From contig JALMLS010000449.1 of assembly GCA_038496445.1 (NCBI GenBank), positions 1-52,897 on the forward strand: a stretch of 52,897 bases of DNA, given 5' to 3'. Positions 8,866 through 48,394 of this stretch are shown here, piece by piece. The notes beneath the pieces are model-generated. The model was given only the letters and a program-made list of their open reading frames with translations, had not been told where the DNA came from and made no database searches. Numbering within the stretch: the first letter of the stretch is position 1; the number at the start of each line of letters is the position of its first letter. A program made the translations under genes and the position numbers. Origin of the DNA: Trichosphaerium sp. ATCC 40318 (Eukaryota > Protista > Tubulinea).

Positions 8866-9915
8866 TTAGGGTCTTGTTATCGTATGAGCACCAGTCAATT
8901 CCTTTACAATTTCATCTGTCATAGCTCCATCTGTCATAGCTAGTTTTGTTAAGCCGATAGTGTGCACACCTACAAGCGCTTTTAATGCTGCAACTGTTAT
9001 GCTTATATATTTCAAATTGATTTTATGTACACCTGCCAACGCCTTGATACCCTCATCTGTAATTGTATTACAAAAATGCAAGTTGATGGTGTGAACTCCT
9101 GCCAGTGCCTTCACACCCTCATCTGTAATTGAGCAATAAGCCAAGTTGATGGTGTGAACTCCTGCCAGCGCCTTGATACCCTCATCTGTTACGCTTGTGT
9201 GTTCCAAATCAATTTTATGTACACCTGCCAACGCCTTGATACCCTCATCTGTTATACCCTCATCTGTTTTTAAGCCACAATAACCCAAGTTGATGGTGTG
9301 AACTCCTGCCAACGCCTTTATACCCTCATCTGTTATTGAGCCGCAATAACGCAACTTGATGGTGTGAACTCCTGCCAGCGCCTTCAAACCCTCATCTGTA
9401 ACACCTGTATATGTCAAATCAATATCATGTACACCCGCCAACGCCTTGATACCCTCATCTGTAATTGTGGTACAATAAAACAAGTTGATGGTGTGAACTC
9501 CTGCCAGCGCCTTCAAACCCTCATCTGTAACACCTGTATGTGTCAAATCAATATCATGTACACCCGCCAACGCCTTGATACCCTTAGCTGTAATTTTGTA
9601 GCACTTTTTCAATTTGATTGATTGTACTCCCCTCAATAGCTTGATAGTATAGTCTGTTACATGTTCACGATCACGAAAGTGAATAGTTGTATTCTGGAGC
9701 AATGCACTACCAGAAAGGATTTTCACATCATTTTCTGTAATGTTGATACAACCATACCCAACGTATTTTTGGACAACATCGTACAAAAAGTGGCATGTAT
9801 GGGCTGTATTGAGTGCGTGAATCCCTTGTTTGAGTATATGAACTATTATTTCAATTGGCAGCGCTATTAGGTAGGATACCGGCTGAAGTGTATTTTCAAT
9901 GTCTTTTTTTTCCAT
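8866..9915 (-). CDS. intronless F-box + cysteine-containing LRR protein
   Basis: LIALPIEIIVHIL..TAHTCHFLYDV (F-box) followed by about 10 near-identical repeats ITDEGIKALAGVHTINL. The first ATG after the shared upstream element is 9915 (MEKKD); the ORF track extends to 10119. Confidence 0.85.
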   Translation of the reverse strand: MEKKDIENTLQPVSYLIALPIEIIVHILKQGIHALNTAHTCHFLYDVVQKYVGYGCINITENDVKILSGSALLQNTTIHFRDREHVTDYTIKLLRGVQSIKLKKCYKITAKGIKALAGVHDIDLTHTGVTDEGLKALAGVHTINLFYCTTITDEGIKALAGVHDIDLTYTGVTDEGLKALAGVHTIKLRYCGSITDEGIKALAGVHTINLGYCGLKTDEGITDEGIKALAGVHKIDLEHTSVTDEGIKALAGVHTINLAYCSITDEGVKALAGVHTINLHFCNTITDEGIKALAGVHKINLKYISITVAALKALVGVHTIGLTKLAMTDGAMTDEIVKELTGAHTITRP

Positions 9916-10062
9916 TCGGGTTACACTAGACAAATGAGTTTGTGGAATGAATAAGCTGGGGGTTTTTGTGTTGTACTTAACATGTAATACGTTGCTACTA
10001 TTCAACGTTAGTGCTAATCTGTTTTGTTTAGAGTTTTTGTCAGTTAAACAACACCTTCGCCA

Positions 10063-10123
10063 AGCTGTGGGTTTTATATTTGCAAAGAATGTTGTTAGCG
10101 AACACGTGTTAATATTCAATGAC
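10063..10123 (-). promoter_or_regulatory. 61-bp upstream element (CACGTG + TATA-like) shared with 15828-15888
   Basis: Reverse complement matches 15828-15888 at 58/61 positions; ends 148 nt upstream of ATG 9915. Confidence 0.6.
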
Positions 10124-16029: not shown

Positions 16030-17758
16030 ATGAGTACTATTGGAGTGCCGGTTAACCGAATTAAAAACCTACCAGATGACATGCTAGCGCTAGTGTTATT
16101 CATTTTCAGCGATCCAGTAATCGTTCCAATATTAATGAAGCGAACTTGCCGTCTATTCCGTGATTTTGTTCAACGTCTCCCTGACGCATTCTACATCTCT
16201 CTATGTAAGCGTCTATCGCTTCATTACATGTTTCCTCTCTACAAAAAACAAACAATACGCGATTTCTGGTTTGACTACATCCCAGTATACTTGAAGTACA
16301 CAAAATATCATCCAGAGAACTTTGCAATAGACTGCGAAGCCTTTAAAAAGGTTGTAACTAAAATCGGCGATAGAATGAAAACTGACGTCGTTTGGCCCAC
16401 AGAAACCTTACTATTACTCCAGACAACTGCTGAAGCATACTTAACAAAGAGATTTTCTTGGTTTTCCGAAACAGCAGAACGTGTCAAAGATCACGTGGAT
16501 GTCAACAAGTTGACACTTCAAAAGACAAAAATGATACGTGAAGATGTACCTTATGGCCCTCACCGTATATTTAACTGGTTGAGCGATGAGAGATTTGCTA
16601 GTGTGTTTGGCGTTGAGTATAATGAAGAGATTGCAAAAGAAGATGAGGATTACGTCTGTAGCGACCAAGAGGAGCTCGAAAACGAACCTTTTGTTGTAGC
16701 TCCTTATGGTGATTTTTATGACGAAGTAGAAGATGGTAAATGGAGACTTAATATGGATAAGTTGGATAATATTACAGGACTTGTTCACCATAAACCAAGG
16801 CTTCTATCAAACAAAAGAATTAAAGCACTAGAAAAGCTTCACGGGAAGAGTTTTTACAATAACACAGATGCGTTAGGTATGACACCAATGCATGTTGTAG
16901 CAGAGCAAGCAGAACTAAGACGATATTGATCCATACCATGTTAGGGCGTATAGTCTACTTGAGTCACAGCATAATAACAATCAACAGGATATGCTTGGTA
17001 AAACAATACCTATGTATATGGGTGAGAAACTAATAGACGCAACTACATGGCATGGTGAAGAGCTTCAGGATGTATATGATATTAATATAAGAGATAATAG
17101 AGGATGGTCTTTTTTACATCATAATCCTGTCTCTAAGGAAATAGCTACTGGTCTACATCTATTTGATATTCATCTATTCTGGATGTGGTTTGTTGGAGGA
17201 AAGTATGATTTACTACTTGATGAGGATGTTATTCCTTGTTGGGGAAAACTCGATATTTTTAAACAAGATGTTGATGGACGTACTATCGCTTTCAAGCTCT
17301 CTGAAGTTGATAAAGAGTTTCATACAAGTGGGTACGGTGATTTCACACAACTCATTTGTATGCATGAATGTTTTGTACCTAATCATCAAGATATCCTTGG
17401 TGATACTGCACTTATTGTTGCTTGTAAGGTTTATAATCCTCACATGATTTTTACGCTTATTTTCTATGGTGCTGATCCTTTGATAAAGAATAATCAAGGA
17501 ATGACAGCTCTTGATTATATTAAAGATTGGCAACAATGTGATCCTTCTCAGATAGAAGATGCTATGTGTGATGGTGATGAAGAGATTGATAATGAGATTA
17601 TTGCGGCACTGAAGACATGTATTGTTCCAAAATCTGCTGTTATAAGAATGGCAGCAAGCGATTGTCTTGCTCTTTGTGGAGAACCTTGGAGACATGAAGC
17701 TATGAAATACATGGAAGTTGATATACTGAAAGAAAAGTTTCAGAAAATTGATTCTTGA
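16030..17758 (+). CDS. F-box + histone H3-like fold + ankyrin-repeat protein, intronless, split by a 1-nt frameshift near 16917
   Basis: IKNLPDDMLALVLF..MKRTCRLFR (F-box); H3-like segment 16294-16548; ankyrin-like DALGMTPMHVVAE and DILGDTALIVAC..GADPLIKNNQGMTALDY. The second ORF's frame is open back to 16919, so deleting one A from GAACTAAGAC fuses the two ORFs. Confidence 0.75.
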
Positions 17759-18405
17759 GGACAGTTGTATATATGACACAGAACACAGTAGCTGTCTGGT
17801 CACCAGCATAAAAATAAAAATATTACACCAAGTACTATTCAAGAGTCTCATATTTACTTATTGCCACAGTGAAGACGCCAAAGGGCCACACATCTTATTT
17901 TTTCTGAGAGTGTAGTTGCTTGCCATCTCTGGCTTTTGTATTCTCTTTCAAAGTGAACAAAAGTTCTATTGGTACAATACAGAATAGTGCTTTTCCGACT
18001 TAGCTACTATTTAACAGTAGTCTCGTGTTCCTATTGTTTTACAATAGTACGCTACTCGTTGTGTATACACTTTGACCGGATGTGTTCATGAACTTCATTG
18101 TCAACAATAATGATGCCAATGTATACTCATGCGTGACGGAAGGGTAACTTTAGTAGGTCCTTCATGTAGAGCAATTTACACATATGCGACAAAGGTGCTT
18201 GCAATCGTAAATACGAAAAGCGTGACTAAAGGTAGCAGTTTTGCCTACTTGGAGAAAACCATGTATGTACGAAGTTTGTACGAATTTTGCCATTCATGTT
18301 TATTAATAAACAAAGCCCTTAAAACCTGTAACAGTTTTAGACCCTTTGTGCAAAGAACTGTGTTAAAGCAAAGAACAATTAGTGTACCACAAGTAGTTGC
18401 AAAAA

Positions 18406-20161: not shown

Positions 20162-22169
20162 ATGACCACGCCTAAACCAGCTATGAGAGTCCCAGAAGAG
20201 GAGGAAGACATTTTTACTGACCGCGATCTGATAAACGACAGATACGAAGTGGTGAAGCGTTTGGGCAAAGGAGGCTATGGTAATACTTTTAGCTACATGT
20301 AGCGTTTTTATTAGGCCTTTTCTTGCCTGTACAGCGATCTTTTTAATTGGTTGTAATTGTTTGTGAAGGTGAAATTTACCAAGCACGAGATGTTACAAAT
20401 GGCCAACTTGTTGCGGTCAAAGTGGAACGCGTAACCAAACCCGGCAATTTGTTGGAGGAAGAAAAAATTCTGCGATCCCTGAACGGTAAGTACCCCTTTA
20501 TATATTAATGGGGAGCGCAAATTCGTAAACAACAAAAACTAAAACTAAAACGCGTTCGTTTGTATTTTTTTTTCGTTTTGCATTTGGACTTTGGGCTCAT
20601 GTGTTGGTTTAGAACGCGGAGCACACTACGTTCCTCGATTGATCAGTTCAGGCCGCCACAACGACATGGTGAACTTTATCGTCATGGAGCTTCTTGGCGA
20701 AAATTTATCCGTATTACGGTTCGTTTGAGCGTATATGGATGCCCTCAGTGTGACTTGTTGTTTAGGAGACGACAACCAACACATAAATTCTCCAAACTCA
20801 CCACAATGGCTCTTGGTTTGCAAATGCTGCGTGCAATAAAAGAAGTACACGATTTGGGTTATATTCACAGAGATATTAAGCCCGTACGATGATTCAAAGG
20901 CGATTTTTTGGTTTTTTTTTGTTTTTTCGGTTTTCCCCACCTGCTTTTTAACTATTTGTCCTCAATCACTCATATTCTCTACAGGGCAATTTTGTTATGG
21001 GTTCTGCTGCAACTGATACAGAGCGTACTGTAATGTTAATCGATTTTGGTCTTTCAAGACGTCATTTCCGCCCAGAGGGTGGTGTACGACCTGTACGTTT
21101 GTTTTTTTATTATATTTTTAGAAGTATGATGATGCAAAACTTTATTTTTGGGCGTTTTTGGCGTTCAGAAAGTAAAAGCTTACTTTGATGTTTAGAAGCG
21201 AAAGTGTGCCCGTTGGGTGGGCAGTCGCCGTTATATGTCGATAAATACTCACCAACGTAAAGACCAAGGGCGTCGCGATGACTTATGGTCTCTTCTTTAC
21301 GTTTTTATCGAATTTTACACCGCAACTCTTCCTTGGGCGCATTTACGTGGTATTCAGAACCTGGTACGTTGTAGTTTGATTTTTTTCTTCTGGATAGTAG
21401 GCCTTCTAGAAGGTTTTGTTTTTTTTGTTCGAAAAATAGTGTTGACGCCATTAAAGGATAATGTCCGGGATATGAAAATTCAGTATAATAATGAAAAACT
21501 TGTAAAGAACTGTCCTGAAGAGTTCTTAAAGTTTATGAATCACATTAAAGAGCTCCGGTATGAAGACCGTCCTGACTATGATTATTTGATGAATCTTCTT
21601 TCGAAACTGTTCGATGATGATGGTGGTACGTTGTTTGTAGCTGTGCAATCAGTTTTTATTGTACTGGATTTATGTTGGTTCTCTTTATACTCATGCTTTG
21701 TTGTTTAGGTGACGAATCATTTAAATTTGACTGGGAACAACCAGAGCCTAGAAAGGACGAGGATAGCATGGATTATGATCCTGGTAGACGGTACGCTGAT
21801 AGGTTTTTTTTTATTTTAATTTAATTTGCGTATTTCACTGTGCTAAATACTTTTCTAGACCTGAGGTACGCACTGGAGGGAAGGACTCTGGTAGTATTGA
21901 AGAAAAGGATAAGCGTAGAACGCTTCATCCTTCAGGCAATGAACGTGTACTCACAAACAAATTGGTAAGGGATTTTTTTTATGGCATTTGAGAAACTTTT
22001 ATTTTAACACGTGTACCACCTGACACGTGTAATTTTTGAACAAAAAAGAAACCTCGCGTATACTCTTTTCATGTTCTTATGATTTATTCTTTAGCCCGAA
22101 GACAGCGATCCTAGAAATCGTAAAAAGAAGAAGAGGAAAGGCTGGAAGAAAAAATGTACCATAATGTAA
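20162..22169 (+). CDS. CK1-group (tau-tubulin kinase-like) Ser/Thr kinase with C-terminal CAAX, multi-exon
   Basis: LGKGGYGEIY, VAVKVE, VMELLGENLS, GYIHRDIKPGNF, LIDFGLSR, GSRRYMSINTH (SIN replacing APE, typical of the CK1 group), QGRRDDLWSLLY. Ends KKKKRKGWKKKCTIM*. Confidence 0.9.
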
Positions 22170-23280: not shown

Positions 23281-26200
23281 CTATGTAATAGGTGGGTTAT
23301 GATCGTCGTCGCGTTCTGGTTCGATTCGTATCGACCTCCACGCGCTTTCCATTAGTTTGCATCTTTTCCTGTATAGTTTCTGATATCGCTGTGTCATTCT
23401 GCGCTGTATGTTCTTGAGTTTGTTGTCCGTGTATTTGATGTCGTAGCCAGCCATGAGGCATTTCACTACGATCGCCTTAGGGATGAAGCAGTCGCCATTG
23501 ATCCATTCTGTATCTGTTTCTTTCATTTTGACTTTTGGGAAGCTTCTGCGAAACTTTTTAGTGGTTTTATGCTTGATTTCTGTTCTGTGTTCTTGGGTGC
23601 AGCTACACTCGTTAAGAATGTGGTTAGTGTCCTCTTTTTCAGCAGTGCATAGTAGGCAGTTGGGGTGTTTGTATTTTGCATTGTACGCTTCTGTGTTATG
23701 TTCTCCTGTGTTCTTGTTCATCTCATATCTACCGCACAGTCGTCTATTGCGCGCCTTCAACATAAAGCGTATGCTTTTGTCGTTCTTTATGGGTTCTTCT
23801 TGTAGTGCTGTGGATATGACCATGTCCTGGTCTTTGTAGTGAGGGAAGTCTTGGTTAAATGCCTTCGTTTCGTTATCTCTGTATCTGTTTTGAATGGTGT
23901 TTCTAATGGATCCTTCTAGTAGGTTGTCGTTAAAGTCATATAGGGAACATTCTAGTGTGGTGCGTCTCTTGGGTTTGGATTCCGGTGGGAGCTCTAGCGC
24001 TTCTTTGGCTAGTCTATCTGCTTCGTCATTACCGTCTATGATCCAGGCAATGTCTTCTCCGAAGGTGTTGTGTAGCGTATTGAGTTCTTGGTATATTTCC
24101 GCGTTTTTGTTGGGGGTTGTTGCTAGCTTTTGTAGTTTTCATTTACGTGGCTGGGGACTTTGAAGAAGGTGACAAGTCCTCCCTGTTTGTTTTTGAGGGA
24201 GATGGCTCTATTCATCTCTTCTATGAGGGCTTTGTTTGGCGCTTTAGCTTTTTGTAGGTGCGTTTTGCCTCTCCACCTAGTGGCACAGTGTATTACGTAT
24301 TTGGAGTCTGTGAAGATGTCTATGTCGTCTTCTCTGTTGGCGTTTTTGATGGCATATGTGGCTGCTTCTAACTCTGCGATGTCGACCGTGTCGCCTGTGA
24401 TTGTTTTGGAGTAATAGTTTCTGTCGTCATCAGGGCCGTAGTATACACCCATACCCGCACCGGGTTGACCGTCTCTCTTGGAGCCGTCTGTCCACACCGC
24501 AAGTTTTTGCTTGTCGGTGCAATTGTAATTGCAAAATTGGAATATTTCGTAGGTGGGATTCATGTTTCGGAGGAGGTACTGTTTCAGATTTGTGGAGTTG
24601 TTTTGGCTGACGATGTTTTTCAGCTTTTGGTAGTTCTGTACTGTTATTGAGGCCAAAGGGCCTGTGAGTTGGTTAAACTCTTTGATGTGTTTTGTAGTGG
24701 CCACATCGGCCCATTTTGAGTCTAGAGGTATGTTTAATTTGGTAAATTTATGGTAGTCGGCGTGGTTTAGAGTATCAACTATTTGATCAGGTACTGTTTC
24801 ATGGTTGACCGGGTTGATTTTAATTTCGTTTAGGAGCTTGACATATGTAGTAATGCGTTCATCGTCTATGTCGTGCACTGCTATTGGAGGTAGTTGTCTG
24901 AGCGTTTCTCCGAGATTGCGTCTGCCTATGCGATCAAGGTATTTGTTATCTTTGAGTCTTTGCCTAGTAGTTTGGCGTGCTATTGAGCCTATGCGCGTGT
25001 TGATGCCCATGCAGTGCATGTTGGCTATGAAGCCGACATTTGAGAGGAGCGAGGGTTGTGTTGCTCCAAAGCCCCCTTCCTTTGGATCTATCCATAGTTG
25101 GCTGTATTTAGTGTATGATGACATGGGAACTGACCAGAAGAGGTTTTTGGCGAGTGCCTTCTTTAACTTGAAGATTTTGCTGTTGGGTATGTGATAGAAG
25201 TTAGCGTGGTATTGTAGTGCTGGGTTAATCACCGTGTTGATGATTTTGCGACGTGCCGTTAACGGGATTTGTCTATGTTGTATTAATGCTAGTCTGTACA
25301 GGTATGCGTTTGAGGCGGCGTTGAGATCTACCGACCAATCTAATTCTGTATTTACGTGTATTCCTAGGTATTTGTAGGACTTGTGTAATCCTATATTTTC
25401 GATTTTAAGGATATTTCCGTTGACTTCAATGTCTATATCACCCGCCTGTGCTAGCGATGACATATATTTGGTTTTTTTGACGTTGATGGATAGTCCATTG
25501 TGTTGGCAGAATTCTTGGAAGGTTTTTACCATATCCTCCATCTCTTCCTTGTTGTTTGAGAGGAATACTAGATCATCGCAATAGGCGAGGATTGGGATTT
25601 TGAGCAGCGCGTTTTTGGCGAATGTGTATCCTTGATAGGTGTTCTGTATGTGTTTAATAATAGGGTTAAGTACTGTGATGAATAGTAAAGGGGAGAGGAT
25701 GTCTCCTTGGCGGACTCCGTTTTTGATTTGGAATTGATCGGAGAGACCGCACGGTGTGAGCAGTTGCGCCGTGCCGTGTTTATATGTGCCTTCTATTGCT
25801 TGAATCATTTTCTTGGGTACTTTGTAGTATGTGAGGGTGTCTTTTATTGACCAGTGTTCTATTGAGTCGAATGCTTTTTTGAGATCAAAGAAGGTGAGGT
25901 GTACATTTTGGTTGTCGTTTTGTTTGTTGTCTTCCATGATGTTAATGAGTGTGTTGACGTGTTCTAGGGTGGATCTTTCTTTACGGAAGCCGTTTTGGAG
26001 ATTGGAAAGGAGGTTGTTGTCTTCCATGAAGACTACTAATCGATTGTAGAGTATTCTTGTGTATATTTTGTGCTGAACGCATAGGAGCGCTATAGGTCGG
26101 TAGTTGTTGGGTGCTGTTTCGTCTGATCCATTTTTGTGTATTAGGCATATGATGGATCTGTTCCAGGAGGAGGGGATGATTCCTGTGGCGTATGCTCGTT

Positions 26201-29200
26201 TGCACACAAGAAAAAGGATGTCGTGGTAACGTTCTGGTAATTTCTTAAGTACTTCCGCCGGTATGCAGTCTTCACCTGCTCTTTTCCATTCTTTGGTGTC
26301 GTGTAGGGCTTGTTCATATTCGCTTCTGGTGATGTCGTGTGTTTTCATTGGTTGTGTGATTGTTGTGTCGTCTTTGAGCCATTTTGGTGTCGGGCCCTTG
26401 GGTTTTGGGCTATTTTTCAGGGCTGAAACTCAGCTAGGCATTACCTTAAAAAATGATGCATATTCCTAACATTTGGCATCAGATGGCAAAATCAAGGCAT
26501 TTGCATTTGGCATTGCCCAATAAAGTAAGGCATTTTTACAAAAAGGCAATGCCTTCATCAAAAAGGCATTAAAACCAGGCATTTTTGGGCATCTTTTGGC
26601 ATTGCATAAAATCAGGTAATGCCTTGTATTGCATTTTTTGGCATTGCATAAAATCAAGTAATGCCCTGTATTGCAAGTACTTTATGCCTTTATTATGCTT
26701 TATTTTTTTAAGCATTATATGCCTTGTATTCCAATTCATATATAAGGCATTGCTTATACTATATCATAGGAACTGATCACATTAAGGAAGTGGTTTAAGC
26801 TAAGTAACAGTCAAACAACTTTTACACTTTTTTTTTCACATCACCTATTGACGTTTTATATAGATAGGCACCTAGAGCTTTTAGTAATTCATGAAATTAG
26901 ACGAAACCACCGCCAAACGAACCGCAGCACCCTATTTCACCTACAACAGTACTAGGAGTGAACTCCGCGATATTTCCAGGACCGCGGAATTCTAACACTA
27001 CAAGGTAAGTTTTTTTTTTTTTTTTTCTACACCATCTCATATTTTCTTTAAGGTTTTTTCAAATGTGGACTTAGGAGTTTTGTGTATTGTATGTGTACTG
27101 TATTATAAAATAAATAGTTGTGTTATTACCTGAAAATGCCCTGGTTTATTAGGCACTGTAGACTATGATAATGCTTTCTTTTTGCCTTCAAAATAAGGCA
27201 TTGATGCATGAGTTATGCCCTAATTTGAAGGGCATAATTCCTAAAAATATGCAGGCAAAACCATTGCAATCTTGTGTACCAGATGCAAGCATTTTTCATC
27301 AAATATGAGGCATTTTTGGAGCAAAAAATAAGGCATTGCCCTGTATTTGCCTTTTTGAATGAGGCAAAAACTAGGCATTTTTGTAAAAAATAAGGCATTA
27401 TTTGATGAAAATGCCTAGGCATTGTCCAAAAATGCCTTGTTGAGTTTCAGCCCTGTTTTGCAGAATCTTTTTCCAGGTTTTGACCAGCAGTTTAAGCTTG
27501 TCTTCTGTGTCGGTGATGAGTTCTTCTGTGTTTGGGTCTACAAGCGCTGCCATATGGGCACGGTTACGTCTGGAGAGGAGGTTGTCGAAGAATTTTTTTG
27601 GTTCATTTTTGTAGTTTTCTATGAGTCTATCGATGTTTTGATGTATGATCCTGCTTTTGACTTTCTCAGCGCGGCGTCTTTGTTGTTTGGCGATGTTGTT
27701 GATCGTGTTTTTTATGAGGATGCGTGCTGTATATTCCACTTTGCCGCGGTATATGTCTAGTATGTTGTGAGTCAATGCCGTCAGCATATTTGGTAACACG
27801 TAGCGATTTCAGCATGACATCTTTCCATTTTGTCCAGTTATGCGTAGATATGTGTTTCCGTTTGTTGATCTTGTTGGCGATCTTCCTAGTTCTTCTTTTT
27901 GCGTTGGCGATTTTGTTAAGTTTCTTATCGAGGAGCTTGCTATTTTTCCTAGCTTTACGGGTGCCCAGGGTCTTGACGCACGAGTCGTAGATGTCTTGGT
28001 TGATTTTTTTCGATATTTCATCAGGCGATGCCTGTTTGTTTTGCAGGAATTTTTTAAGCTCTTCGGCAGTGTCGTCATTAATTTTAAAGTTTTGTAGGGG
28101 TATCAGCACGTGTTTTGCGCTTTTTGATGTACGAATTGTGGGTTTGGCAGTTCGTGGTATGTAAGTCGTTCTGTTGTTTGCACTGAGGTCTGTTTTGTAC
28201 GTGAGTTTGATTGGTACGTGATCGCTGTCAGTAAATGGATTTTGTATGATTTTAGTGTGTAGAATATTGGCTATGAGTGATCTTTTAACCAGGAAGAGGT
28301 TGATATGTGCTTTGGATCGATACATGTTGGTTTTGCTTTGATTGTCATTGCCGTATCGAGTGTATTCCTTCTTATTAGGGAACTTGGCGCGGTATGCGCA
28401 TGTGAGGTTGTGGGCGCTCATGAGTTCTTTGAGCTTTGCGTTTTGTTTTGGCGGTTTTATGTGTACAGTGTCTTTGAGGAGCCACCTGTCTTTGTTAATG
28501 TCTAGCGTGGCGTTGAAGTCTCCACCCATGATGATCTCGTGTTTTTTGTTTTTGTATTTCTTTTTACGTTTCTCGATAATTTTGTTTAATCTCTGAAAAA
28601 AGACTTTACCTTCGCTGAGTGAGCATGGCGCGTACACATTGACAATAAAAATGATGGTTCCTTTATTGGGTTCCATTTCTGTGATGATAAATTTTCTAGA
28701 CGTATCTTTGTATGTATTAACTACAAGCGGCAACAGGGATTTGTGAATAAGCGTAATCGTTCCTTCTGAGGGCCTTGGGTCGAAGTTTGGGTTTTGTTGT
28801 CGTTTTGTATAGAAATTTCAATTTGTTCCATCGTTTTGCCTCTAGATGGCCAATTTTTGTAGCGTCTTTCGTGCGCTTTGTTGCGTCGTTGCTCTAGAGA
28901 GAGAAGGTTGTTAAAGTTTAGGAAGTTGTCTGTGAGTTCTGCGTAGGTGCTCCATTTGTAGTCGGCATTGCGTATGTGTGGTTCTTGGACCAGGACGATG
29001 CCTGCTTTCGCCTTTTTCGCCTGTCTGTAGATGTTGTAGGAGTTATCGCCCCAATTTCCGTTTGCATTGAAAGAAAGGAGCGTAATAGATTCGTTACTGG
29101 TTGGGTATGTATTATCGAGTGCGTACGTGTTGTTTGGGTGGTTTTTCTGATAAGTGTTGAGGTTCCAATTGCACGGTGTCGCTTTCGCTATCCTCGCAAA

Positions 29201-29278
29201 GTTGTTACCTTGTAGTGAGCCATGATTATTGCCTAAAAATCTGACATCGCTGGTTAAAGAAACTTTAGAGAGACTCAT
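23281..29278 (-). pseudogene. LINE ORF2 (APE endonuclease, reverse transcriptase, RNase H, CCHC), frameshifted and interrupted by a MITE
   Basis: APE: SFNANG, VQEPH, GGDFN, SDH. RT: NYRPIAL, QNGFR, FFDLKKAFDS, GVRQGDILSP, YCDD, YKYLG. RNase H: WTDGS, AELEA, FTDS, KVPSH, GNDEADRLAK. Zinc finger CLLC..EDTNHILNEC. Frameshifts near 28770, 27770 and 24130. Confidence 0.92.
26418..27455. mobile_element. non-autonomous DNA element, family D (CAGGGCTGAAACT TIRs, AGGCA subterminal repeats, 2-bp TSD TT)
   Basis: Perfect terminal inverted repeats. Removing the element plus 2 bp restores LINE ORF2 in frame (..KILQ|KNSPKPKGPTPKWL..QPMKTH). Confidence 0.9.
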
Positions 29279-29308
29279 GATATAAAATATTGGATGGTAA
29301 GGTTTTTA

Positions 29309-30816
29309 TTATACTGTAGGTGAGTTTTTTCCAGCAATTGGTACAAGAGGGGAAGAGTTAGAGGGCTGCGTAGAGCTTTTGTCGTTCGGTACGACTCTAC
29401 GACGTTTACGGTGAGTTTTGTTTTGGACGTTTTGGGAGGAGTCGTTTTGCGTAGCGTCTTTTTGCGCTCCTTGCGCGTCACACATGTTGGTATCGCCATC
29501 TTGGTCGTTTGGTGCCATAATTTCACTGTGTAGCTTAAGGAGGTCGACTTCGACTCGTAATTTGGTGAATTCCTGTTCCATACTGTGGATACTGTATTTG
29601 TGTGAGAAGAAGGAGGAGGGAAGAGTAGGGTAAGGATTGCATACCAGCCAGTTAAGGCTTCGAGATATTGCTGTTGGGTAAGTATTTGCAACGATTGTTC
29701 GTCGAATTTGTTTTTGTATTGCATCATGAACTCTGTGTTGCATTGTTCGCGAGGAGTTTTAGAAGGGAGGTTTGTACGATAGTTCCAGTCTTTGTCGTAG
29801 ACGTGAGGTTTGTTGATGGCGAGTACGCCTGAGTACGAGTGGCGGTTTGCGACACCGTGAGCCAGTTCCTCAATCATGGCTTGTTTGGAGGGGAAGGTGA
29901 TGAATGCGTAACCTGTGCATTTTTCGTTGAAGATTGAGCGTCCGATAAGTATGCTTTCCATAGGGATTTGGCAGTTTGCGGCCTCGAAGACCATTTTACG
30001 CATTCTGCGTACCGATATATTGCCTTTAGGCAGGCTTTTGACAGCCAGAGTGTGTGGGTATATGACTTTGACGGGTGGTGTGAGTACCACAGGGTGTTCG
30101 GTGTTGCCTATAAGGCCAGCTTCGTAAAGGGCAATGTTTCGTTCTATATCTGAATAGAAAACGAAGCCACCATAGGCTCCGAGCCATCCTGTTGCCAATG
30201 CTATGGCTTTTGGATCGATGTGTTTGATCTTTTCTCGCTGTTGAGTGGAGAGGAAGGCGGCAGTAAATGTGCACGTATCTGCGTGGTTGAGCTGTTGCTG
30301 TTTTTGCCAGGCGTTGTTGTAGGAGTTGTTGTTGGAGTATCTTGCGTTTCTCCCTTTGTTGTTGTAGTTGTTGTTTTGTGGTGCCGTGCGCATTATGGTG
30401 TGTAGTTGTAGTTTGCATGCTGCTGCGTTTTTGTGTTCAGTGTAGTAAGCTTCTCCACTGTTGGACCATACGGCCTTAGCTGCTAGAACAGCGTTGTCTT
30501 CGGAGTTGAGGTTGACGTACACGAAGGGGATGAAGTCTGTTCCCCCATCGCAGTGATGGTCTGTGTTGGTAGGAGCGAGGATTTCTTCTATAAAGAGTTG
30601 TACTTGGCGTGCTGAGTAATCTTCACGTTGGAGGACGGCGATGATGGGGTATTTGTCGTCTACTAGAACCGGTTTGTCTGTATACATGGAGCATTTGTCC
30701 ACTGGGAAGTGTAGCGTAATGGCTGGTTGCGTCGAAGCGAGATTCAAGATGTTCTTTACGGGGGTGGTGCCGGTAGAGGAGAAGGAAGGAAGAGAAGGAA
30801 GAGATGAGGTCCACAT
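29309..30816 (-). CDS. LINE ORF1: RRM-containing nucleic-acid-binding protein with coiled coil; probable 53-nt intron at 29592-29644
   Basis: RRM-like TLAVKSLP..TGYAFITFPS. The first ~120 aa of the track ORF (to 31188) mostly derive from the adjacent MITE and the 5' UTR; likely start ATG 30816. Confidence 0.75.
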
Positions 30817-30927
30817 GTTGAGAATTTGTATAAGTAGGCCAATGTAGGCAAAAGGAGGATTTATTGGAGAATGTGGATTTATATAACGATACGGTTTTCT
30901 TGCGACCGGTCGATTGTTTATTTTGTG

Positions 30928-32896
30928 CAGGTCTAAAATTTTCGAGCTGTTTTTATGGTAGATACCATGGATTTGTGGTATAATTATACCATTGATTACA
31001 ATTTTATACCACAAATTCCAGTATAATATACCATAAATCACAGGATTTATACCATAAAACAGCCAAATTATACCATAAATATGCAGTAGAAAGTGCGAAT
31101 TTATACCATATTTTTGCACCTGAAAAAATGCAATATATGGTATAATTCTACCATAAAACATGGTATAAAACACAGTATAATACCACAAAGTCTGGTATAT
31201 TATACCTTAAAACTTGGTAGATTATACCACAAAACCAGGTGTATTATACTGTGTAAAAACTGTTCTAATAATAAACCACATTTATTAATACATTTTTTTG
31301 TTTACATCCGTGACCTTTGGTTTTGTCCATATCCTCTTTTGTGGTAGTTGACACATCAAATAACCTTCAAAAAAAATATTGTACTTGCTGTAAGTGCATC
31401 GAATGGACATAGCATGAAAACTAAAAGAAAAATTAGTGAAGGCTTGATGCACAAAATAAATAGTCGTACAAAAATTGCTGTTTTGTTGTGGTGGTGGCAC
31501 TGAGAGAAACAAATGACCTGTGCGGTGGAGCTAAACCAAGACTAAAACAAAGAAATGAAAATAACTGCCAACTTCATCGGAAACAAGTTCTAGCGGAATT
31601 GTACCTGTTAGCTAACACATCTTGGTTTTTTTTTATCATCTATCTAGCTTGGTTAAAACCTATGGCAAGCGGCTTCAAAACAACTACTTTTAGCGTACCT
31701 TGTGTTGTGCGGGCGATAAACTGGACAAGACTTAGTTTTGTGCTCTGACTTAGCCAATTGGTTTACAATATCACTCGTAAGGTCAACGCATGGGTGTGAA
31801 GCCTAAATGCTATCTGTTCTGGCAAATGCGCGCGTTTAGTAGGGAAAAATTCAAAAAAATCCAAAAAATCCAAAAAAAACCAAAAAACTCAAAAAATGGG
31901 TAGGCTCTGAAACAACTTGGCCTTATAGCACTATTCACGCGTTTTAACATGCATTGGAGCGTATATCAAAAATGGCAAAAAAAAATAAATAATTTTGCTC
32001 CTGATTTGGTAAATGAGGCTGTATGGCGTTGATTGAGTGTAAAAATGCCTATGGAGGGGAGAAAAAAATGAGAGCTGGGGAAAAAAACCTCCAATTGGAG
32101 GTTTTTTGCGAATGGGCATTTTTCGAGCACTAAACGCGTTTTTGGTGTGTCTACCACTGTAACGTTCTAACATGGGGTACGTGGAGTGGTTTCTTCCTCA
32201 AATACCATCAATCGGAGAAAATTGTCCAATTTATCCCTAAAACGCCTGTAATTGGGGCGCGTTACCAGATTTCTCTTTTAAAACTGTTTTTCACACATTT
32301 ATATGCCAATTATGTTCAATAACGGCTACTGTCAAAGCATTGTGTGGTATGGCGTTTGCGTAGGTCCAAAGGCTATTAAATCAAGTGTAGACTAAGTGAG
32401 CTTTGACTAACTTATACTTATACGGTATAATACCACGGTATAATACCACATTTTATGGTATAATTATATGGTATAATGCATGGTATACTATACTTTAAAA
32501 TACAGTATAATACCATGGTATAATACTGTGTTTTATGGTATAATTATATGGTATAATGCATGGTATAATATACTTTAAAATGCAGTATAATACCATGGTA
32601 TAGTACCATGTTTTATGGTATAATTATATGGTATAATGCATGGTATAATGTACTGTAAAATGTGGTATAATACCATGGTATAGTACCATGTTTTATGGTA
32701 TAATTATATTCTATAAATTGAAATATGGTATAAACATGGTATAATGGCTGTTATACCATTTGTCCAAAAAACATGGTATTATACCATATTTTATGGTATA
32801 ATTATATGGTATAATTATGGATTATACTGAGCTTGTACCATAAAAGGTGATTATACCATAAAATACGGTATAATACCGTGATAATTTTCAGACCTG
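30928..32896. mobile_element. non-autonomous DNA element, family A copy 1 (CAGGTCT TIRs, GGTATA/TATACC subterminal arrays)
   Basis: Near-identical inverted copy of 46423-48394. Flanks TG / AA do not match. Confidence 0.9.
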
Positions 32897-46422: not shown

Positions 46423-48394
46423 CAGGTCTGAAAATTATCACGGTATTATACCGTATTTTATGGTATAATCACCTTTTATGGTACAAGCTCAGTATAATCC
46501 ATAATTATACCATATAATTATACCATAAAATATGGTATAATACCATGTTTTTTGGACAAATGGTATAACAGCCATTATACCATGTTTATACCATATTTCA
46601 ATTTATAGAATATAATTATACCATAAAACATGGTACTATACCATGGTATTATACCACATTTTACAGTACATTATACCATGCATTATACCATATAATTATA
46701 CCATAAAACATGGTACTATACCATGGTATTATACTGCATTTTAAAGTATATTATACCATGCATTATACCATATAATTATACCATAAAACACAGTATTATA
46801 CCATGGTATTATACTGTATTTTAAAGTATAGTATACCATGCATTATACCATATAATTATACCATAAAATGTGGTATTATACCGTGGTATTATACCGTATA
46901 AGTATAAGTTAGTCAAAGCTCACTTAGTCTACACTTGATTTAATAGCCTTTGGACCTACGCAAACGCCATACCACACAATGCTTTGACAGTAGCCGTTAT
47001 TGAACATAATTGGCATATAAATGTGTGAAAAACAGTTTTAAAAGAGAAATCTGGTAACGCGCCCCAATTACAGGCGTTTTAGGGATAAATTGGACAATTT
47101 TCTCCGATTGATGGTATTTGAGGAAGAAACCACTCCACGTACCCCATGTTAGAACGTTACAGTGGTAGACACACCAAAAACGCGTTTAGTGCTCGAAAAA
47201 TGCCCATTCGCAAAAAAACCTCCAATTGGAGGTTTTTTTCCCCAGCTCTCATTTTTTTCTCCCCTCCATAGGCATTTTTACACTCAATCAACGCCATACA
47301 GCCTCATTTACCAAATCAGGAGCAAAATTATTTATTTTTTTTTGCCATTTTTGATATACGCTCCAATGCATGTTAAAACGCGTGAATAGTGCTATAAGGC
47401 CAAGTTGTTTCAGAGCCTACCCATTTTTTGAGTTTTTTGGTTTTTTTTGGATTTTTTTGGATTTTTTTGAATTTTTCCCTACTAAACGCGCGCATTTGCC
47501 AGAACAGATAGCATTTAGGCTTCACACCCATGCGTTGACCTTACGAGTGATATTGTAAACCAATTGGCTAAGTCAGAGCACAAAACTAAGTTTTGTCCAG
47601 TTTATCGCCCGCACAACACAAGGTACGCTAAAAGTAGTTGTTTTGAAGCCGCTTGTCATAGGTTTTAACCAAGCTAGATAGATGATAAAAAAAAACCCAA
47701 GATGTGTTAGCTAACAGGTACGATTCCGCTAGAACTTGTTTCCGATGAAGTTGGCAGTTATTTTCATTTCTTTGTTTTAGTCTTGGTTTGGCTCCACCGC
47801 ACAGGTCATTTGTTTCTCTCAGTGCCACCACCACAACAAAACAGCAATTTTTGTACGACTATTTATTTTGTGCATCAAGCCTTCACTAATTTTTCTTTTA
47901 GTTTTCATGCTATGTCCATTCGATGCACTTACAGCAAGTACAATATTTTTTTTGAAGGTTATTTGATGTGTCAACTACCACAAAAGAGGATATGGACAAA
48001 ACCAAAGGTCACGGATGTAAACAAAAAAATGTATTAATAAATGTGGTTTATTATTAGAACAGTTTTTACACAGTATAATACACCTGGTTTTGTGGTATAA
48101 TCTACCAAGTTTTAAGGTATAATATACCAGACTTTGTGGTATTATACTGTGTTTTATACCATGTTTTATGGTAGAATTATACCATATATTGCATTTTTTC
48201 AGGTGCAAAAATATGGTATAAATTCGCACTTTCTACTGCATATTTATGGTATAATTTGGCTGTTTTATGGTATAAATCCTGTGATTTATGGTATATTATA
48301 CTGGAATTTGTGGTATAAAATTGTAATCAATGGTATAATTATACCACAAATCCATGGTATCTACCATAAAAACAGCTCGAAAATTTTAGACCTG
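46423..48394. mobile_element. non-autonomous DNA element, family A copy 2 (2-bp TSD CA)
   Basis: CAGGTCT..AGACCTG termini; CA on both flanks; inverted near-identical copy of 30928-32896. Confidence 0.92.

Follow-up and report, generated by a model that had tools for sequence, protein, structure and literature searches.

The gene described here occupies positions 16030-17758 of the forward strand of a 52,897-nucleotide stretch of DNA from the amoeba Trichosphaerium sp. ATCC 40318 (contig JALMLS010000449.1, positions 1 to 52,897; hereafter the window). A prediction made from the letters alone had read it as a fusion of an F-box, a histone H3-like fold and ankyrin repeats. Two open reading frames (ORFs) are found at the locus. 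ORF1 (16030..16929, + strand, frame 1) is 299 amino acids long; it contains an F-box-like motif, an H3-like stretch and an acidic tract, and it ends within a first ankyrin repeat. ORF2 (16991..17758, + strand, frame 2) is 255 amino acids long from its first ATG, or 279 when counted from 16919, where its frame opens. It encodes degenerate ankyrin repeats together with a short run of acidic residues and a helical tail. The predicted order of modules, namely F-box-like motif, H3-like stretch, acidic tract and ankyrin repeats, was thus recovered, but not within one uninterrupted frame, as ORF1 is closed by a TGA at 16927-16929 and the downstream part lies in the +1 frame. Indeed, the 1729 nucleotides of 16030-17758 equal 3n+1 and do not hold a single reading frame. 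A protein including both pieces would have about 576 residues. With a probability of roughly 0.6, we read this gene as encoding a substrate receptor of the Skp1-Cullin-F-box (SCF) type that carries a half-fold derived from histone H3 and is frameshifted at this locus.

The H3-like stretch spans 16339..16458 (+ strand; ORF1 residues 104-143) and aligns with H3 residues 66-105, i.e., helix 1, loop 1, and the N-terminal half of helix 2. The peptides quoted in the original prediction were located within a few residues of the positions given for them, and the H3-like one corresponds to ORF1 residues 92-172. We built a profile restricted to H3 from 42 H3-like loci taken from IMG/VR with an H3 fragment, of which 30 distinct H3 folds were aligned. 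With the resulting hidden Markov model (HMM), ORF1 scored 20.7 bits (p 1.9e-8 per sequence) and the H3-like segment 23.8 bits, while the best of 5,000 ORF1 shuffles reached 8.6 bits and the best of the matches listed among six-frame pieces of the window of at least 40 amino acids reached 3.6 bits. Scaled to a proteome of 10,000-30,000 proteins, a p value of 1.9e-8 amounts to an expect value (E) of about 2-6e-4 for H3. With hhalign, comparison against the alignment of 30 H3 folds gave a probability of 86.7% for ORF1 (P 4.4e-6) and of 92.8% for the segment (P 3.9e-7), over 39 ungapped columns that pair ORF1 residues 105-143 with H3 residues 67-105 at 33% identity.

A pairwise comparison was made with residues 65-131 of an H3 chain from the PDB, a point mutant at residue 116. 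The Smith-Waterman score of the segment was 74, or 65 with residue 116 masked. Shuffling the segment 20,000 times gave a mean of 22.5 (standard deviation 4.2) and a maximum of 49, and the next-best score in six-frame pieces of the window, 54,000 amino acids altogether, was 35. Broken down by H3 element, the alignment score is +12 for helix 1, +14 for loop 1, +32 for the N-terminal half of helix 2, -5 for the C-terminal half of helix 2, and +22 for loop 2 plus helix 3, with the mutant residue counted in. The first half of the fold yields a local alignment score of 62, which was equalled by 0 of 20,000 shuffles. Compared with histone H3 and CENP-A (PF00125), the stretch at ORF1 104-143 runs ungapped against H3 66-105, has a predicted helix 1 and loop 1 of equal length, and shares F67, V71, I74, K79-T80-D81, L92-Q93, E97-A98-Y99-L100, and F104 (H3 numbering). 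It differs from H3 in having no significant match past residue 105 and no basic tail, and in being embedded in a protein of about 576 residues.

These scores have to be set against the possibility that the H3 likeness arose by chance or convergence, the region then being an ordinary amphipathic helical linker from the F-box to the repeats, of the kind that other F-box proteins have. Several results count in favor of that explanation and against H3 ancestry. PF00125 (Histone) is the top Pfam match of ORF1, but at 14.0 bits (E 0.063), and at 17.2 bits (E 0.0062) for residues 85-175 alone, it stays under the gathering cut-off of 26.4 bits, so that every test against a curated threshold failed. 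In a phmmer search of the PDB with the segment, H3 chains came first (E 0.033, 17.6 bits), but a haemoglobin beta chain followed closely (E 0.06, 16.8 bits); such proximity, with noise only 1-2 bits under the H3 match, means that single-sequence scores are close to noise. When the N- and C-terminal segments served as queries, unrelated PDB chains scored up to about 15 bits. In addition, the candidate arose from a genome-wide scan by eye against many protein families. On the other side stand the H3-only profile, in which the best of 5,000 shuffles falls 12 bits short of ORF1 (p 1.9e-8), the HH-suite probability of 87-93% for H3, and the coincidence of predicted helix and loop limits with those of H3. 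The low-confidence models described below place helices at residues 102-115 and from residue 124, and these limits, at an offset of 38 residues, match those reported for H3 in the 1997 nucleosome structure for helix 1, for loop 1 and for the point where helix 2 begins. Among the matches listed, the protein language-model neighbors of residues 85-175 are PF00125 clusters, with scores of about 0.8 and 182/256 features shared; these neighbors are not independent of sequence similarity. Taken on its sequence, the H3 likeness of ORF1 residues 104-143 exceeds chance and is real but partial, being limited to H3 66-105, and a chance or convergent origin seems unlikely to us. We find it quite probable that this stretch of about 40 residues descends from histone H3. 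The H3 likeness first proposed for a longer region is therefore retained for residues 104-143 and not for the remainder of the fold, where no significance was obtained.

The original prediction had gone further, to a complete helix-loop-long helix-loop-helix fold, and a histone fold of that extent could pair with H4, an H4-like partner, chaperones or viral histones, which would make the protein a histone-decoy SCF adaptor. Some features are compatible with this: the local alignment is collinear over H3 67-131 with a single 1-residue gap and reaches the IR near the H3 C-terminus, ORF1 residues 123-174 contain neither proline nor glycine, an acidic tract lies downstream of the H3-like segment, and the second half, when anchored in register (shifts <=2), is mildly above shuffles (p 0.013 against one H3). 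However, ORF1 residues 144-170 (16459..16539, + strand), which carry the alignment on in register through the rest of helix 2 (its C-terminal half), loop 2 and helix 3, show no significant similarity. The second half of the fold alone has a p value of 0.055; against the H3 profile it scores -0.5 (p 0.063, 6% of shuffles being as good), and 6 of 238 other ORF1 windows equal it. Thirteen residues are invariant in the alignment of 30 H3 folds (P66, F67, L70, V71, E73, R83, E94, A95, E97, F104, H113, R116, and D123). ORF1 keeps four of them (F67, V71, E97, and F104), and the other nine are replaced, including R83, H113, R116, and D123. The H3 core residues L103, L109, and I112 are paired with R, E, and E in ORF1, and R116 and D123 with H and T. 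In the 1997 nucleosome structure, R83 is reportedly the loop 1 arginine that binds DNA, R116 and D123 form the clamp between loop 2 and helix 3, and H113 is the histidine of the four-helix bundle. Judged by its residues, the H3-like segment is not a nucleosomal histone, since the functional residues of H3 are mostly replaced.

Structure models did not restore the complete fold either. Single-sequence AlphaFold2 models were unusable, with a predicted local distance difference test (pLDDT) score of 33.5 for ORF1 and of 45.5 for residues 72-180, and they interrupt helix 2 near residues 141-145. When the model of residues 72-180 was submitted to Foldseek, the matches listed were all H3 chains, at E>=1.1, with a template-modeling (TM) score of 0.27 and a root-mean-square deviation of about 10 Å; we count these matches as an echo of the sequence and not as evidence for a fold. 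The supposed H4-like tail carries no histone signal (see below), and the gene is frameshifted at this locus. Altogether, we did not recover the complete fold of the original prediction, given a second half that is not significant, nine replaced invariants out of 13 and unusable models, and a histone fold able to pair with such partners strikes us as distinctly doubtful.

The relationship between ORF1 and ORF2 was also considered. The passage from frame 1 to frame 2 can be confined to eight bases (16919..16926, + strand), limited by a TAA at 16916-16918 in frame 2 and by the TGA at 16927-16929 in frame 1. The break interrupts an ankyrin repeat: designed ankyrin repeat proteins (DARPins) align to ORF1 residue 296, over ...GMTPMHVVAEQAEL, and the ankyrin consensus G-TP-H--A continues up to the break. 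A short intron joining ORF1 and ORF2, or two separate genes, could be proposed instead of a frameshift. Frame-preserving GT...AG pairs of 91 and 94 nucleotides do exist (16897 or 16894 to 16987), and introns of roughly 91-94 nucleotides occur in the genome, in a neighboring kinase gene. However, the candidate donors GTAGCA and GTTGTA are unlike the GTACG of all four introns of that gene, and splicing out the 91 or 94 nucleotides would cost the repeat the portion that agrees with the ankyrin consensus, which extends to residue 296. Within 16919-16926 there is no donor of the GTACG type, and the sole GTACG of the gene falls within ORF2. An intron at the break was thus rejected on the donor sequence and the ankyrin consensus, and it is implausible that two eukaryotic genes would lie 61 nucleotides apart with the first one stopping midway through a repeat, which leaves either arrangement very improbable. 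Because the break falls within an ankyrin repeat and no intron of the local type fits, we read 16030-17758 as one gene broken by a frameshift within 16919-16926.

The assembled frame would give a truncated protein without the ankyrin domain, and the locus is probably a young pseudogene or a null allele. An assembly error at the break is a less likely alternative. No homopolymer is found in 16919-16926, which makes a real mutation somewhat likelier than a long-read error. It should be noted, as a point against a genuine frameshift, that public reads do not span the break, the matching Logan contigs being confined to 17198-17397 and 17539-17759, so that an assembly error keeps some weight. These matching contigs are 150-230 nucleotides long and come from two runs (X1 and X2) of one sample, none of it recorded as RNA. 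They stop exactly at 17759, where adapter letters follow, and differ from the window at 17308 (T>C), 17685 (C>A), and 17717 (G>C); the three mismatches point to another strain or allele, or to a reduced-representation library.

The F-box-like motif lies at 16069..16176 (+ strand; ORF1 residues 14-49) and reads LPDDML...TCRLFRDFVQR. It was recognized by eye with a pattern comprising an LPxE/D start, spaced hydrophobic residues, and C/S-K/R-x-W/F about 25 residues further on. The sole Pfam match of ORF1 residues 9-57 is to PF00646 (F-box), at E 0.075 and 13.4 bits over profile positions 25-39, and the gathering cut-off of this family is 20.5 bits. With an 84-amino-acid N-terminal piece as the query, no F-box was found in Pfam or the PDB. 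The assignment is thus weakened by scores below every curated threshold and by the failure to match any F-box chain of the PDB. The N-terminus of ORF1 also resembles the F-box-like N-terminus of a neighboring leucine-rich repeat (LRR_6) gene (BLASTP E 0.066), and the language-model neighbors of ORF1 in the ESM Atlas include clusters with F-box and ankyrin domains, at scores of 0.82-0.87, which are below 0.9 and serve as leads only. The F-box of the original prediction is consequently present as a by-eye motif, but with weak profile support, and we regard an F-box identity of ORF1 residues 14-49 as plausible.

Downstream of the H3-like segment, the acidic tract that had been predicted there was found at 16624..16737 (+ strand; ORF1 residues 199-236), with 16 Asp or Glu and 1 Lys or Arg among the 40 residues 197-236. 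Next comes the beginning of a first ankyrin repeat (NNTDALGMTPMHVVAEQAEL; 16858..16917, + strand), which is truncated by the frame break; DARPin alignments place the start of this repeat, which adds to those of the downstream frame, at ORF1 residues 263-296. The best-supported repeats lie at 17228..17545 (+ strand), residues 104-209 of the 279-amino-acid frame, where tankyrase-1 and Ank_5 are matched. A PDB search with this downstream frame gave E 1.9e-6 for tankyrase-1 and E<=1e-4 for Bd3460, HACE1 and designed ankyrin proteins; at E<=1e-3, the ankyrin chains matched numbered more than 20. The Pfam matches of the ankyrin part are Ank_5 (E 5e-5), Ank_2 (E 1e-4), and Ank (E 1.6e-3), each slightly under its cut-off. 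The ankyrin repeats of the original prediction are thereby borne out.

The C-terminal tail (IIAALKTCIVPKSAVIRMAASDCLALCGEPWRHEAM; 17588..17716, + strand) is weakly like a single HEAT/PBS-type repeat (E 0.22), and its best PDB matches are synthetic HEAT/alphaRep proteins (E 0.22-0.84). The peptide that had been compared with H4 belongs to ORF2. Neither histone families in Pfam nor H4 chains in the PDB were found at E<=10 with the tail region 17540-17755, and the proposed H4-like tail was rejected on these grounds.

Relatives of the gene were sought with ORF1 and the 279-amino-acid downstream frame as separate queries. A word-index search covering proteins 0.55-1.75 times as long as the query found no relatives of either. 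An exhaustive phmmer search with ORF1 of 1.84 billion representative proteins of any length returned nothing at E<=0.001. No match to the gene was obtained in IMG/VR, a look-up of the exact product was likewise blank, and tblastn found no second copy within the window. In the literature, we found no paper on a protein that combines an F-box and ankyrin repeats with part of a histone fold. The best-supported picture is that of a lineage-specific F-box-like/ankyrin adaptor, as far as its sequence can tell.

Three known systems offer partial parallels. Like the F-box and ankyrin receptors, e.g., Legionella AnkB and the fungal and protist F-box/ANK clusters of the ESM Atlas, the predicted protein has an N-terminal LPxx-type motif followed by ankyrin repeats. 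Unlike in these receptors, about 200 residues, comprising the H3-like stretch and the acidic tract, separate the motif from the repeats here, and no sequence relative was found. Ankyrin repeats and an F-box-like motif are also combined in the ANK/PRANC proteins of poxviruses and giant viruses, and viruses associated with amoebae commonly carry genes of the ANK/PRANC type. The language-model neighbors of ORF1 include one Nucleocytoviricota cluster, with a score of 0.82. However, the order is reversed, as PRANC is C-terminal in the viral proteins, which also have no histone-like segment, and the IMG/VR search was blank. In Fbw7, Cdc4 and beta-TrCP, a helical linker directly after the F-box positions the substrate-binding repeat domain. 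We know of no report of histone similarity in these linkers.

Some of the H3-like genes collected from IMG/VR showed features of their own. Contigs labeled as giant viruses encode such genes, and one contig of 911 kb carries two of them (L033 and L036). The L034 gene has a 19-residue insertion in loop 1, and the L036 gene a 23-residue insertion in helix 2, which may be an unspliced intron.

The window as a whole is eukaryotic in character. The neighboring LRR_6 protein gene is a 417-amino-acid ORF on the minus strand (8866-10119), with LRR_6 repeats at E 2e-33 and an N-terminus (LPIEIIVHIL...TCHFLYDVVQK) that gives an F-box-like match at E 0.079; from its sequence, this is probably an F-box/LRR protein of the FBXL type. 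A spliced protein kinase gene lies 3 kb downstream of the fusion gene (20560-21760, + strand), with Pkinase matches at E 4.7e-4 and 0.01 on two exons and an HRDIKP catalytic loop. All four of its introns (4/4), which are about 60-120 nucleotides long, start with GTACG and end with (T/C)AG, and GTACG...(T/C)AG can usefully serve to recognize splice sites in this genome. Further downstream is a retrotransposon without long terminal repeats (non-LTR), of the long interspersed nuclear element (LINE) type (24123-31188, - strand), which encodes a reverse transcriptase (E 2e-40) and an RNase H (E 2e-14) at 24123-26348 and an endonuclease (E 1.5e-6) at 27666-28733; a 637-amino-acid ORF upstream in this element has no Pfam match. 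The guanine-cytosine (GC) skew is strongly positive across 24-30 kb. A short repeated element is present in two copies of opposite orientation (31416-31574, - strand; 47748-47906, + strand), which gave near-identical spurious tblastn matches. No meaningful repeats that could represent mobile-element flanks were found around the gene.

On these observations, an intact version of the protein would start with an F-box-like motif at the N-terminus, continue with a helical region and an acidic tract, and end with a short helical tail preceded by four to five degenerate ankyrin repeats. Within the helical region, some 40 residues would represent one helix-strand-helix half of the H3 histone fold, the remainder of which would have diverged past recognition or was never present. 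Because the residues of nucleosomal H3 are mostly replaced, the H3-like piece would act as a structural or interaction module, or as a spacer between the F-box and the ankyrin repeats, and not as a working histone. The F-box-like motif would bind Skp1, and the ankyrin repeats would hold the substrate. A far bolder extension can be formulated, in which the gene would belong to an expanded family of SCF receptors whose half-fold, captured from H3, would join the acidic tract and ankyrin repeats in docking onto H4, a chaperone of H3-H4 or a histone of a giant virus; such proteins would be histone-decoy ubiquitin ligases that control how much chromatin protein of the host or of a virus is available. 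We consider this extension a long shot.

At the locus itself, the outcome is more modest, as the gene is frameshifted and neither the full histone fold nor the H4-like tail is supported. Histone folds occur almost always in small proteins that bind DNA or a partner, and we found no earlier description in the literature of an H3 piece inside a ubiquitin-ligase adaptor. If the descent from H3 is true, the gene would exemplify the natural reuse, as a module, of one half of a histone fold, and it would bear on the proposed origin of the histone fold from a helix-strand-helix unit. It would also suggest an amoeba-specific link from ubiquitination to chromatin or to giant-virus histones.

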